A DNA stretch of 64,000 bases from Octopus sinensis (lineage: Eukaryota): positions 27,094,001-27,158,000 of the forward strand of contig NC_043009.1 of assembly GCF_006345805.1 (NCBI RefSeq), in the 5' to 3' direction. The first letter of the stretch is position 1, and the number at the start of each line of letters is the position of its first letter. Shown piece after piece: positions 1,793 through 7,700 of this stretch. Made by a program: the position numbers and the translations under genes. The notes beneath the pieces are model-generated. The model worked only from the letters and a program-made list of their open reading frames with translations, ran no database searches and had not been told where the DNA came from.

Positions 1793-4700
1793 ATCCAAAT
1801 GAAACAGTTGATTACAGGCAGGAGACACCCTGCCAATTCTAAATAATGCCAGTTGGATATAGCATAGGCGAACGCTACTACGAATATTACCCCTGATGGA
1901 TACAATGACATGTACCAAAAGTTAATAGGAGTACGTATTTTTGAAGGTGTAGATTCCACAGCTGGAATGTTAAAAAACACAAATACAATTTGAATAACTT
2001 TTTAAATGTGAATTTTAAATACATATTAGCACACACACACACACACACACACATATATATTAGGTTGGTGCACAATTGTTGCGGCTTTTTTTCAATAAAC
2101 TTTATTCAACAAAAACAATAACAACATTTAACAAAAACATCTTTAAATGATTATCCCGAAGCATATTCATCAGCTACTTCAATTTTTGCTTAACGGTTTG
2201 TTAAAATATTTTGTTGAATAAAATTTATTGAAAAAAAGTCGCAATAATTATTCACCAACCTAACATATAATAAAACCATGACTGCGTGAAGAGGTTCAAA
2301 TGTTTTCTTACTGTAACATTACATTAACATGAAAACTTAATGTTGTGTAAATAGAGTAAGTTATTCTAATACAATCTGTAGCTTTCTAAATGATCAAATA
2401 TGGGAATAAGGTAAGTCAGTTCAGTAATATATTAATTAAACTGTGATCATTATGTATTGGTTTCATTTAGGACAAATTATGAATAAAGGTTTCCAGAAGA
2501 CCGACATTCTGAAGAGGGAGTAGTATCTATGTACATGATAAGGCGGTGAAAAGAAGAGAAATTGGTTAGTTGGGTGTGTTTGACTGTAAGGAGCACGACA
2601 CAGACCATTTTGTGATAAGACGAATTCATTGTAGGGGTAGTAGACAAGGAAATGAAAACAGCTACTTTTGCTTTGATTTATTTAAATTGAATTCAGGCCA
2701 GTCATTTGGATGGCCGTTTTGGATGCAGTCTAGGTTGTTTGTATGTCTTGTAGTGGCATCGTCCCAGACATACACCATTGTGAGTTTCACCTGAGTTCGT
2801 AGAAGGACTGTTTTTGTTGGAAGTTAAAATATTCCAAGCGCTGAAGAGTAAAGCCGGTCTCTGAGATGCTCCATTTGTTCAGTTGATGGTGTGTTTTCTT
2901 CCACAGAGATCTTCAGTAATGTGGAGGCCTAGAGATTTGAAGCGACCATGTGGGTTGCATTATGTGATATTTAGGGATTGTGATTCTAGATATGTGAACT
3001 GATTGTGCCTCTGTGTTGATGTTCGTGGAAAATATTTTCGAGGTCACTGTTGACAAAATCTTTGCAAGTCTGGAGGGTGGTGCCGAGGTTTTTAGCAAAT
3101 ATCGTGTGGAGAAGAAGGGACTGCCTCATCTGCACAGTCGTGGGATGTCCTTGAAGTTGGAGGCATATTGACCGTTGATGCTTCGAAAGGAATGTGTGGG
3201 ACACAATATCAAACAATGGAACACACAAGCGTTCGTTGAGAGAATTTCTTATATGAATAAATTGTATAAGATGTGTCTCTCTTACACACACATATATATG
3301 TATATATATATATATATATATATATATATATATATATATATATATATATATATATATATATATATATATATATATATATATATATATATATATATATATA
3401 TATACATATATGTGTGTGTGTAAGAGAGACACATCTTATACAATTTATTCATATAAGAAATTCTTTGTTCATATAAGAAATTCTTTGTTTAAATTCCACC
3501 TGCCTTCGTCTTTTGTTTATTTTCATAAAGCTTCCCGTTATATATATATATATATATATATATATATATATATATATATATATATATATATATATATATA
3601 TATATAGGCTAAAATTGACGGCTGTTTGTATCTTTAAAGGAACAGTTTGATGTGTTAGTGAACAGTCAACGGCATTGAGGATCATAAATAGTAGAGTTGT
3701 ACTTCTGAGAATGTTAGCCGCAATAAAGGAACGGGGGCCATCTGAACGAATATTGGTAAAGGGTTACCTGTAACATGATGATTCCGCTATTATTGAAGTT
3801 AGTCATAGAGTCGTGTTCCTTGTCGGCGAGCCCTTCACTGTACAGGATTAACATTGATTTTTAGGCTTCTCGTTATTTTCTGCTGACTGTAGTGTTGTAA
3901 CCTTTTCATATGTTGTGTTTTCTAATATGGATAGTGCTAGGGTTATATAATATACCGTGTCCATTAAAACTACTGCCCTCCCTTTATCAGCCTCTTTGAT
4001 TGTTATTGTTTTATCATGCTTTAATTTGTTCAGCCCATCCCATTCTTTTTTGCATATATATATATATGTGTGTGTGTGTGTGTGTGTGCGTGTGTGTGTG
4101 TGTGTGTGTGTAGTGTATAAAGATAACTTACTCAGTGCGAAAGCGATAAGAAAACTGCCAGTATGTCCGGCAGCTTGAATCCAAAGGAGAACGAGAAAAA
4201 TAATCAAAGATGGTACAAAGATTTTGATAACTCCACTGACGACTAGGCATATGTTTGCCAATAATATAATGGGTCTCCGACCAAATCTGTATATATAAAA
4301 ATCCAGAAATATAATAATTATTATTTGTTTAGGAAATTTGTGTCACATTCCATTTAGCGAGACAATAGTCATATTACATGAAAGAGGAAGCGGAAAGTTT
4401 CATTAAATATTAAAATTTCGTTGCCTGAAACTAGAATTATCACCGAAATTTTGAGTTTTCATATTAAAAGCAGAAAATATCAACGACATATGTCATGTAC
4501 AAAAATGGTAAAATCTCTTTCTCCGATGAGGAATTTTACAATAACGTGGAGATTATTGAAACCTGCAAAAGGTAAGGATTCTGGTGGAATGTACAAAACT
4601 TTAAACACAACGCGCTGGATTTATGTTAAGATAAAGAAAAGGTAAATTTCTCACCTGTCTGATAAGGCCCCAAATACAATTGAACCAACAAGATAACCAG

Positions 4701-7700
4701 CAAAATAAACTGACTGCAAAGTGGATTTTAACCATTTTCTCTCACATACCAAATCAAACTGTAAGTAGATTAGTAAAAATAGAACCGATTAAAAACTCCA
4801 GAATTTTACGGAACTTTAAAAGAATATTGAAGCGTACAGTTTTAGCTTTCTCTCCCTAATTAAAAACTGAGAACGGAAATTACTCTTTAATTTGATGTGT
4901 ATTTCCAGTTCTTTCCAGGATTTTGCCTCAGAAACCAATTTAGTTATTCTCAATGGCAATATCATTTGTCATATCAATTAACCATAATGAATCTTTAAAA
5001 CATAAGTGGAAAGAATTTCCTGATGTTTTATAGATATTAAAATTTATTAACATTTTTTCAGCGAACATACGTCGAAGAATATAAAGTATATTTGTGGAAT
5101 ATACGATGAAAACTGTTGATATCCTCTCGTAACGAAACAGATTTTAAGCAGCCGTCACTGTCTCATCTAGCGATTTCATCATACACAAAACCTTCGTTAA
5201 ACACATCCAGAAAACCTTCCATGTCTTTATGCTTCTAAATTCTCTTGTACTTCAGGTCGGCTAACTTTTCAAACACCAAACAATGCAGGATTTCTCCGCT
5301 TTGAGAATAATGCAAACATGCATGCCCCCTCTCTCCCTTCCTCTCTCATTTTCTCTCCTTTCTTCTCTCTTTCTCTCTCCCTTCCTCTCTTAATATATAG
5401 GTTCTATCCATGCTTAGCAAAGTAACCCGATTTGAATACTTTTCCCTTACCTGTGTTTAAAGTAACTTGACGAGAATGGATTTATTCATGATATAATTTC
5501 TATCAATAAAAAATGCTGCTGAAACAGCTGTTGTGAATCTTTAAACTTCACTTGTGTTTTTCTCAGACATCCGTGCGCGCACACACACTCAGACACACAC
5601 TCGCAGACACACAGAGATACACATACAGAGACACAGACATGCATATATATTCATACACATACGCACACACATATATACTTACATGCATACATGTGCAGAT
5701 ACCTACACTAACATGTGCATTACTTTATATCAAAAGGCGGTGAGCTGGCAAAAACGTTAGCACACCGGGCGAAATGTTTAGCGGTATTTCGTCTGTCTTT
5801 ACATTCTGAGTTCAAATTCCGCCAAGGTCGACTTTGCCTTTCACCCTTTCGGGGTCGAAAAATTAACTACCACCTGCGTACTGGGGTCGATCTAATCGAC
5901 TGGCGCCCTCTCCCAAAATTTCGGGCCTTGTGCCTAGAGCAGAAAAGAATATTTTATATCAATTAGTTGATTGAATGACTCACCTCACTCACAACCGTAG
6001 AAAACTTTTCCGTCAGAAATTTCCGTCCATAAGAACACTGTAGTTCAGATGAATTACTTGGTGGTGTTGTATAATATGTCCCAGTGAAGCTATTGTTATA
6101 TATAGAACATTGATCGTCGCCGTTTGGTTGAAGCATTTGTAGATATTCATTCTCTGTAAGATTTGCAGGAATCAACGAAGCATTAAAGTTTGGTGGGTAA
6201 CATAAGAAGGGAACATCGGCACTGATAAATACCAAACTCATTCCCTGAAATCCTGACAACACAGATATGATCAAAATATTAATGTAGAACCAGCGCTGAT
6301 AGGGTCCAAAAGAACCACATTTTTCTAAGATCTCTGAAATATTTTTATCTGATGTATCTGAAATAAGAACAAGAAATTTTATCAGACATGTAATGCATAT
6401 TTTAGTCAAACAGTGGTAAGTATTTTAAAATTTGAATAGTAATTATAGAATGAAACAAACATTTCATAATTAAGGTTTGTTGTTCAGTAAATTTGGAATT
6501 CCTGTATTTTTTAAAATTGTTTCGGTCATTTAACTGCAGCCATGCTGGAGTACCACCTTGAAGGGTTTTAGTCGACCAAGTTGAACCCAAGATTTAATTT
6601 TTAAGTTTTGTACTTATTCTATAGGTCATTCTGCCGAACCGCTAAGTTACGGAGACATAACACATCAACACCAGTTGTCAAGCGGCGATGGGAGGACAAA
6701 TGCACACACACACACATATATATATGTATATAAATATATGTATATATATGTGTAGATATGTATATGTGTGTGTATATATATATATAAATAAATATATATA
6801 TATATATGCATATATGTATACACACACACACACACACACACACACATATATATATATCACCCTGATCACCGTGACCGACCAGGCTATCAGATGTTGCTAC
6901 ACATCGCTGGTCACAATGCGCTTCGCATTGTTTTAGCCTCCAAATGACGCCACCCCACTGGCTAAGCTAGCAGGCCATATATATATATATATATATATAT
7001 ATATATATAATACAAATAAGAAAATGGAGAAACAATTTAGTTTGTTCTTCAACTTTCGGATATTAGAATGTTGAATTATTTATTCATATAACAAAATGAG
7101 AGCCTTAATAGCATACATATGTATCTTATAATTCAATACATATAAGATAAGAATACAGATTATAAAAATCATAATATAAATTATTGAAATCATTAAAATC
7201 ACTCCTTTCAGCTGTTTCAGCCTATGTTTGAAAGCAGTTATTTTAATTTTGATTGCCTATAGTTGTCAATTATATTGAGGTTGTAGGCATTTAAAAATAG
7301 GGTACCCCTTAGTGAGTTGCACCCATCACCCCTAGCTTTCTTTGTGCATATATATATATATACACACACACAGAAACATGCACACATACACACAGTCACA
7401 ACGGGCTTCTTTCAGTTTTTCTCTACCAAATCCACTCAGAAGGCTTTGGTCGGCCCGAGGCTACACTAGAAGACACTTGCCCAAGATGTTACACAGTCGG
7501 ACTGAACCCAGAGCCATGTGGTTGGGAAGCGAGCTTCTTACCACATAGTCACGAGTTGTGTGAATTTCCTTTTGATTTCATAAGAAACATCATTTCATTG
7601 GTCTTAAGAAAAAGCAAACTGAAACAACAATCTGACCAGTAAAGTCCATCTTGTTATTTTTGGTACTACACCGTGTATATAGAATGTTCCATTTGACTAG

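Follow-up and report, generated by a model that had tools for sequence, protein, structure and literature searches.

The 64,000-nucleotide (nt) stretch of the Octopus sinensis genome analysed here, referred to as the window, corresponds to C13:27,094,001-27,158,000 of a 2.72-Gb assembly and carries three genes of SLC22-type transporters, A, B and C, all on the minus strand. They belong to an array of about 16 copies at 26.94-27.37 Mb of C13 (cluster 1), at least two of them broken, which was delimited by searches of the own genome with exon 2 and exon 7 of gene A. A previous interpretation made from the letters alone (the sequence-only reading) held that gene A has diverged from B and C mainly in the transmembrane helices (TM) that line the substrate cavity, and that positive selection for a new substrate specificity was responsible. 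The present analysis places the divergence in several short tracts, TM8 included, which appear to be islands of older divergence in a mosaic shaped by gene conversion and duplication, and which may encode substrate pockets specific to individual paralogs.

Coding exons were located by tblastn with the RefSeq protein of the next upstream gene (P0001, XP_029644289.1), itself found via exon 2 of A, and the junctions were set by GT-AG sites, a continuous frame and the best protein score. Exon models were built for A, B, C and five further paralogs, and all eight genes have open frames and GT-AG introns. Gene A consists of nine coding exons with a frame open over 554 codons and GT-AG sites throughout, exons 6-9 lying before the start of the window; the suspicion that A might be a pseudogene in the exons not seen by the sequence-only reading is not borne out. 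Exon 1 of A is located 3.6 kb upstream of exon 2 within a promoter/exon-1 block (9496-11437) of 92.6% identity, it encodes the same peptide in A, B and C, and its junction with exon 2 is also present in RefSeq XP_036364180.1. Genes B and C differ at 17 of 1659 coding nt (1%; silent divergence, dS, 0.022) and have identical TM1 sequences, at 28025-28093 in B and 48405-48473 in C, both on the minus strand; the hexapeptides corresponding to the TM4-end patch of A are encoded at 26393-26410 (B) and 46781-46798 (C). The coordinates of the features are collected in Table 1.

Table 1 Features of genes A, B and C in the window (positions in the window unless C13 is given)
Feature	Position	Strand	Basis or remark
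Gene A, coding exon 1 (17 codons + 1 nt)	9986..10037	-	exon-1 peptide of B used as tblastn query; ATG and GT donor seen in the sequence
Gene A, exon 2: N-terminal segment, TM1, large extracellular loop	5984..6357	-	AG acceptor 6358-6359, GT donor
TM1 hot spot, residues 43-65 of A	6215..6283	-	14/23 amino acids, 25/69 nt differ from B
Gene A, exon 3 (TM2)	4655..4758	-	0/104 nt differ from B and C
Gene A, exon 4 (TM3-TM4), with TM4-end patch 4145-4162	4132..4286	-	16/153 nt differ from B
Gene A, exon 5 (TM5-TM6)	1793..1961	-	16/55 amino acids, 33/165 nt differ from B
Gene A, exons 6-9	C13:27,092,875-27,087,993 (loci L016, L017)	-	exon model
Putatively homogenised block: distal intron 2, exon 3, intron 3, exon 4	4116..5162	-	blastn
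Gene B, 9 coding exons, read-through C-terminal extension	19588..29508	-	exon 2 27797-28167, exon 5 23509-23677
Gene C, 9 coding exons, 553 amino acids, near-identical to B	40411..49887	-	exon model

Gene B does not have the stop position used by A and C (19588-19801, 3' end of exon 9) and is extended by 71 codons (213 nt) of low-complexity sequence rich in poly-Lys/Asn/Arg, which gives a product of 624 amino acids compared with 553-554 in A and C. The RefSeq models of the locus differ from those presented here. By eye, XP_036364181.1 corresponds to the whole of our A model beyond residue 91 (463 amino acids = 554-91); this RefSeq protein and XP_036364447.1, which covers B in part and terminates in intron-derived sequence, both have the internal Met at position 92 as their first residue and are devoid of TM1. 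XP_036364180.1 is a chimera of exon 1 and the TM1 part of exon 2 of A, the loop part of exon 2 of paralog P5 and exons 3-9 of paralog P3. The chimeric and internal-Met models may have been produced by misannotation of this repetitive array; otherwise they reflect read-through transcripts.

The assignment of A, B and C to SLC22-type ('Orct-like') transporters of the MFS superfamily, forming a lineage-enriched tandem expansion, is supported by profile, structure-database and motif matches, in agreement with the sequence-only reading. The product of gene A (P0037) matches Pfam Sugar_tr (PF00083, 1e-31) and MFS_1 (PF07690, 1.5e-25), and RefSeq names the O. sinensis products organic cation transporter or SLC22-like. 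For the neighbouring paralog P5 the best PDB match is OCTN2 (7e-66, residues 31-549), followed by OCT1-3, URAT1 and OAT1, down to 1e-53. The extracellular loop between TM1 and TM2, of about 77 residues, contains three invariant Cys residues and sequons of the NAS, NLT, NNS and NSS type in the alignment of the eight models. The hallmarks of SLC22 proteins are present, namely the DRFGRR motif between TM2 and TM3, the signature before TM2 and ESPRWL after TM6, with SDRFGRRP, VVSEFDLVCE and [13 protein letters not shown] found in A, B and C. The Y-E/D-R/K gating motif of SLC22 transporters, located on TM7, TM8 and TM10 (PMC10940649), is represented in all eight paralogs by Y383, E408 (D in gene A) and K461.

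The divergence of gene A from B and C is concentrated in a few tracts. In TM1 the 14 replaced residues are accompanied by changes at 36% of the nt, in line with the count of the sequence-only reading (14 of 23 residues, about 25 of 80 nt); its estimate of about 11% for the rest of exon 2 is close to the 6.9% found before TM1 (5/72 nt) and the 10.5% found after it, in the extracellular loop (24/228 nt). Over the whole of exon 2, 54 of 369 nt differ (dS 0.43; replacement divergence, dN, 0.105). The identity of exon 3 was likewise reproduced, and intron 3, previously judged by eye to differ at less than 10%, was found to differ at 16 of 350 aligned nt (4.6%), with additional indels. The two further hot spots named at that time, the end of TM4 (TGSFLI in A, VAFILV in B/C) and TM5-TM6, were recovered as well: the differences in exon 4 are clustered in codons 216-228, and exon 5 with its flanks is only about 73% identical to B/C (blastn). 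The strongest segment is TM8 (residues 411-433, 15 of 23 differing), encoded by exon 7 outside the 64-kb window. Such clustering is non-random, as 14-15 differences per 23 residues were reached in one of 20,000 permutations of 97 differences (P=5e-5). Counted by helix, A and B differ at 14/28 residues in TM1, 0/23 in TM2, 1/21 in TM3, 6/27 in TM4, 8/25 in TM5, 6/22 in TM6, 2/26 in TM7, 13/26 in TM8, 8/21 in TM9, 3/25 in TM10, 3/24 in TM11 and 2/25 in TM12.

Silent divergence between A and B is also very uneven along the gene, with dS values of 0, 0.43, 0, 0.19, 0.44, 0.17, 0.18, 0.11 and 0.06 for exons 1 to 9, respectively. Among codons for identical amino acids, 27 of 116 (23%) carry a silent change in exons 2 and 5 compared with 24 of 332 (7%) elsewhere (Fisher P=1.2e-5); the corresponding counts are 3/9 in TM1, 4/10 at the TM4 end and 2/8 in the core of TM8. 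The proportion of silent differences (pS) reaches 0.53 in TM1, 0.48 at the TM4 end and 0.49 in TM5, against 0.116 in the young exons, and the dS of exon 5 between A and B is as high as that between A and the other paralogs. In exons 3, 4 and 6-9 gene A is joined with B/C by dS. In exon 2, gene A shares 81-86% identity with each of the cluster-1 paralogs, B and C being no closer than the others; in exon 2 trees A is not joined with B/C, and the loops of A and B are placed with different paralogs.

The non-coding sequence is similarly discontinuous. Mismatches in the alignable introns of A and B range from 2.8% (intron 6) to 19% (intron 8), with 8.5% in intron 2, and large parts of introns 1, 2, 4, 5 and 8 cannot be aligned at all. 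Intron 3 lies in the block of about 1 kb listed in Table 1, which blastn aligns with B at 91% identity and with C at 90% and which ceases 16 nt beyond exon 4. Exon 2 forms an island, since the homology of A with B/C ends about 30 nt past each of its splice sites; these flanks fail to align partly because a dispersed repeat is inserted beside exon 2. The repeat, of about 170-220 nt, is located at 5731-5955 in intron 2 of A and adjoins the exon; further copies, 72-88% identical and in both orientations, were found at 13300-13687, 25190-25357, 33920-34307, 51881-52240 and 63857-63998. Intron 4 of A contains an (AT)n microsatellite with flanking arms of about 60 nt, apparently inverted repeats as judged by eye (3240-3480); after these come a short segment duplicated in direct orientation and, at 3540-3606, another (AT)n run.

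Other members of the array display the same kind of discordance. Paralog P2 (C13:26,961,325-26,981,448) differs from A by 28% overall, and in exon 6 with the intracellular loop it has a dS to A of 0.11 and 5 different residues out of 72, which looks like a conversion tract between non-adjacent genes. Distant paralogs have a dS of 0.2-0.45 in the extracellular loop compared with 0.7 to more than 1 in most other exons. Judged from such discordant silent divergence rather than from population data, the locus appears to be a gene-conversion and duplication mosaic in which the hot spots would be islands of older divergence. A comparison of TM1 with intron 3 then sets sequences of different age against each other, and the argument of the sequence-only reading that codons outrunning the neighbouring intron indicate positive selection is not supported: intron 3 is part of a 91-93% identical block, and dS is 0.43 in exon 2 and 0.92 in TM1. 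Candidate donors among the paralogs were rejected for TM1 and TM8 of A, the best nucleotide identity being 70% and 69%, respectively.

For comparison with solved structures, a set of 29 pocket, gate and ion-site positions was taken from four papers (PMC10940649, PMC10567722, PMC10643130, PMC12780140). A and B differ at 12 of these 29 homologues and at 85 of the 523 residues elsewhere (P=0.0017), and the enrichment is retained against other TM positions only (12/29 vs 54/266, P=0.0125). Differences between A and B/C were found at all of the A residues aligned with OCT1 F32, C36, K214, W217 and Q241 (52, 56, 219, 222 and 246, respectively), with OAT1 N35 and K382 (56 and 412) and with OCTN2 L37, V40, N210 and S231 (57, 60, 221 and 242). 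At the end of TM4, residues 219, 221 and 222 align with OCT1 K214, OCTN2 N210 and OCT1 W217/OCTN2 Y211, and in TM1 residues 48, 51-57 and 60 align without gaps to the OCTN2 segment comprising S28, PNGFxG, L37 and V40. Divergence of the pocket between A and B/C is likely. A single-sequence AlphaFold model of P0001 had a mean pLDDT (predicted local distance difference test) of 38 and was unusable for residue mapping.

Roles have been published for residues in two of the mapped regions: residue 36 of OCT1 is reported to set a species difference in drug affinity (PMC10567722), and OCTN2 possesses a PNGFxG motif on TM1 with the Na+-coordinating N32, as well as N210 on TM4 (PMC12780140). The homologues of the OCTN2 Na+ ligands have hydroxyl side chains in A (S52, S221) and are Ala and Phe in B/C, a difference which, as far as the alignment goes, may bear on ion coupling. 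By the PNGFxG-type motif the octopus genes do not belong to the OCTN subgroup, for it reads LSGFQG in A (S52, S221) and LAAMQS in B/C (A52, F221); the other paralogs vary at these positions, and of the OCTN traits only the TM11 Arg is shared.

The variability of TM1 extends over the whole array. The TM1 of A is 48-70% identical in nucleotide sequence to that of 14 other paralogs, compared with 78-94% in the adjoining loop (89-94% for cluster-1 copies), and pairs of non-twin cluster-1 paralogs show 46-71% identity in TM1 and 86-94% in the neighbouring loop. Entropy over 13 paralogs amounts to 1.57 bits in the TM1 core and 0.20 bits in the loop. The site model gives 49, 52, 53, 56 and 60 as the fastest positions of TM1, and these form the stripe that holds the homologues of OCT1 F32 and C36; charged residues occur in the middle of TM1 in some copies (R53/E56 in P4, E53 in P5, K50 in P1 and Q31). 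Between species the picture is different. In comparisons made at the protein level, orthologs from O. sinensis/vulgaris and O. bimaculoides differ in TM1 at 1/28 residues (Q27), 5/28 (Q31), 6/28 (P5) and 7/28 (R34), which is about the protein average, whereas paralogs differ at 12-19/28. At an equal overall divergence of 9%, the paralogs P3 and P4 have 12/28 differences in TM1 and the Q27 orthologs only 1/28 (P=0.0009). Since orthologs retain it, TM1 is not free to drift.

Codon-based tests were performed with our own implementations of the GY94 M0, M1a/M2a, two-ratio and branch-site likelihoods on short alignments and consequently with low power. For TM1 of A and B, dN is 0.42 and dS 0.92 (ratio 0.45); over 15 paralogs, with a tree and branch lengths of its own, TM1 has a dN/dS (omega) of 0.53-0.56, and omega=1 is rejected from below (twice the log-likelihood difference, 2dlnL, 12-14). 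The raised TM1 dN/dS expected by the sequence-only reading was not found, neither the pairwise ratio nor the maximum-likelihood estimate being above 1. The loop has an omega of 0.22-0.23 and a tree length of 2.5 substitutions per codon against 10.4-10.7 in TM1, which together imply about 2.5 times more silent change in TM1 too. The site model places about 30% of TM1 sites at an omega near 1.15, and M2a brings no gain over M1a (2dlnL 0.24, P=0.89). The local ratio of replacement to silent differences (pN/pS) is 0.60 in TM1, 0.69 at the TM4 end, 0.41 in TM5, 1.03 in TM6 and 1.14 in TM8-9, and it rises to 2.15 in the core of TM8, a segment chosen post hoc. At the silent sites of exon 7 gene A is closest to B/C (dS 0.18 vs 0.36-1.2), yet its TM8 core is only 47-69% identical to that of every paralog. 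The A branch in exon 7 has an omega of 1.32 compared with a background of 0.31 (P=0.03), which is not significantly above 1 (P=0.71), and the branch-site estimate of 3.0 for 32% of sites is not significant (2dlnL 0.52, P=0.24).

Taken together, the evidence leans, though not strongly, towards a family of paralogs that share a common scaffold and extracellular domain and differ in paralog-specific pockets, the tracts of old divergence having been spared from homogenisation by selection. Conversion and recent duplication would keep the promoters, several introns and the exons of TM2, TM7 and TM10-12 alike among copies and, family-wide, would homogenise the large extracellular loop as well; TM1, the TM4 end, TM5-6 and TM8-9 remain different, with apparently old divergence at both silent and replacement sites. 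By homology, the divergent tracts include residues that in solved human SLC22 structures build the pocket for the substrate, the gate on the extracellular side and the Na+ site of OCTN, and the version present in each paralog is kept, as far as orthologs were compared, in the corresponding gene of another octopus species. Convertants in the pocket tracts would be selected against, and sheer divergence would further hinder homogenisation. Paralog-specific pockets would imply different substrate or ion-coupling properties; from the sequence comparisons we infer that specificity is altered by the pocket differences and that the islands persist through selection and not by chance. Several points weigh against this explanation. 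No codon model gives an omega significantly above 1, so that selection is inferred indirectly only. No significant periodicity along the helix was detected for the variability of TM1 (moment P=0.73), which is not confined to the cavity face. The focus on cavity helices claimed by the sequence-only reading stands as far as the enrichment at pocket homologues is concerned; it does not hold for TM6 and TM9, usually outer helices and variable here, nor for the cavity helices TM2, TM7, TM10 and TM11, which are nearly invariant, and the term 'cavity-lining helices' describes only half of the divergence pattern. The 29-position set is self-compiled and mapped by pairwise HMMER alignments to solved SLC22 proteins, not onto an octopus structure. 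No donor paralog for the TM1, TM4-end or TM8 tracts was found among 15-16 paralogs, and with the donor absent an old island and a tract imported from a lost copy cannot be told apart. The RefSeq models of A and B that begin without TM1 leave the TM1-bearing form of A as predicted. Finally, the same pattern could arise, with no adaptive meaning, from a neutral feedback in which tracts under weaker constraint diverge until conversion no longer reaches them.

That last possibility, extended to the whole pattern, makes the hot spots the least constrained parts of a polyspecific transporter, which diverged early and became too different for conversion, with homogenisation continuing elsewhere; the paralogs may then be functionally alike. 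We regard it as rather unlikely. It accommodates the low omega of TM1 without a supported class above 1, the raised silent divergence of the hot spots, the missing periodicity with variable outer helices TM6 and TM9, and the predominance of conservative swaps among small or hydrophobic residues in the TM1 replacements between A and B. It accounts poorly for orthologs that keep TM1 at or better than the protein average (Q27, 1/28 against 9% overall), for an enrichment at pocket, gate and ion-site positions that persists among TM residues, for the charged residues in the middle of TM1 of some paralogs and for the TM8 core, where replacement divergence amounts to 3.4 times that at silent sites of the same exons (P=2.4e-5, segment chosen post hoc). 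A replacement excess of this kind would be expected if a recent duplication had been followed by positive selection on the pocket helices of A and/or B/C for a new specificity. Relative to silent sites of the young exons, the replacement divergence of the hot spots is 2.5-3.4 times as high, and relative to the introns taken together 5-6.6 times; pocket homologues are enriched, and exon 7 combines silent sites nearest to B/C with an aberrant TM8 core, the higher omega of the A branch and the branch-site estimate mentioned above. This explanation nevertheless appears improbable, because the TM1 omega is significantly below 1 with no gain from M2a, the A-branch omega does not significantly exceed 1 and the branch-site test is not significant, the local pN/pS values are low or close to 1, silent changes cluster together with replacements, exon 2 of A is not sister to that of B/C, and the changes are evenly divided between the two lineages (45 vs 43). 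As regards recent positive selection, the case has become weaker for TM1, for the end of TM4 and for TM5; it remains, unproven, for TM8 of A alone. The same even division (derived changes being no commoner in A than in B/C) speaks against gene A being a decaying copy whose odd patches stem from lost constraint, as do its nine open coding exons with GT-AG sites, its exons 1 and 3 identical to B/C and, more weakly, runs guessed to be RNA, none of them recorded as RNA, which contain up to 91% of exon 2 words. Decay would be compatible with the unusual residues of A at conserved motifs (D for E on TM8 in Y-E/D-R/K, PKTN instead of PETK after TM12), with its branch omega of about 1.3 in exon 7 and with a RefSeq model devoid of exon 1 and TM1; the replacement divergence of the hot spots exceeds the neutral level, however, so relaxation alone is insufficient, and we consider decay very improbable.

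The surroundings of the window contain further transporter sequences. For the right half of the array, information is limited to the loci of exon 2 and exon 7 found in the genome searches. A second cluster on C13 (64.07-65.02 Mb) comprises about 20 more distant SLC22 copies, 33-62% identical in exon 2, and many weaker exon 7 matches (30-36%) at C9:83.8-92.1 Mb suggest further large transporter arrays. Among O. bimaculoides database proteins, orthologs were found for some array members only (P5, Q27, Q31 and R34). Two damaged copies of exon 2 (L032 and L035) are located at C13:27,229,952-27,233,665. One is interrupted by a (TG)n run after codon 104, at a place where its O. vulgaris counterpart (P0040) is intact, and the other has a frameshift as well as in-frame stop codons. 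Between P5 and A (L016:2601-3889, C13:27,082,601-27,083,889) tblastn detected short out-of-frame matches to exon 6 and exon 9 with 44-68% identity, which are the remnant of a further transporter copy. A search of the accessible literature returned no octopus SLC22 study and no paper on a cephalopod SLC22 expansion, which is not proof of absence.

SLC22 transporters have a central role in the handling of drugs and metabolites, and if the pocket tracts do set specificity, the array would amount to a mutagenesis series made by nature: TM1, the TM4 end, TM5 and TM8 would be available in numerous variants on a single scaffold with a single extracellular domain. Among the altered positions are those homologous to the OCTN2 Na+ site and to OCT1 residues 32, 36, 214, 217 and 241. 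A broader and more tentative proposal, which we think may well prove wrong, is that the approximately 16 genes, with the 20 or so of the second cluster, make up a 'constant scaffold, variable pocket' repertoire with a near-invariant extracellular domain evolving in concert and, in each gene, a separate ortholog-conserved TM1/TM4/TM5/TM8 cassette of substrate-, gate- and ion-site residues. Such a repertoire would provide the octopus with a panel of transporters of distinct specificities or coupling, e.g. for xenobiotics, toxins or signalling amines, held by selection against homogenisation much as receptor arrays are. For genome scans the locus calls for caution in any case, as an excess of exon over intron divergence in a tandem family can stem from gene conversion of the introns and not from accelerated protein evolution.

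Among solved proteins the nearest model is human OCTN2 (SLC22A5; PDB 9pdq and related entries), the closest solved relative of P5 and the sole PDB match of exon 2 of A. The octopus transporters share with it the architecture of TM1, a large extracellular domain, TM2-6, intracellular helices and TM7-12, the TM11 Arg at the carnitine-carboxylate-binding position (R496 in A, B, C, P5, P3 and P1) and the Tyr/acidic/basic gating triad (Y383, D/E408, K461). They differ in that the Na+-site residues and PNGFxG are not kept (L-S-G-F-Q-G in A, A-A-M-Q-S in B/C) and in that they form a large tandem array; the alignment is remote. Matches over the full length, at 1e-53 to 1e-63, were also obtained with OCT1, OCT2, OCT3, OAT1 and URAT1 (SLC22A1-3, A6 and A12). 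Unlike the OCTs, the octopus proteins have Arg or Cys and no Asp at the position equivalent to D474, and the pocket aromatics of OCT/OAT are only partly retained (Y249, W376, Y383, F468).

The evolutionary pattern has a precedent in the red/green opsin arrays of primates, and duplicates under gene conversion with selection are the subject of the Teshima-Innan model. As in the opsin arrays, introns and constrained exons would be homogenised here while short function-defining exon tracts and nearby silent sites stay divergent, a pattern in which exons seem 'faster' than introns without a dN/dS above 1. The octopus array would differ from the opsin arrays in its size, about 16 genes compared with two to three, and in having several islands per gene.

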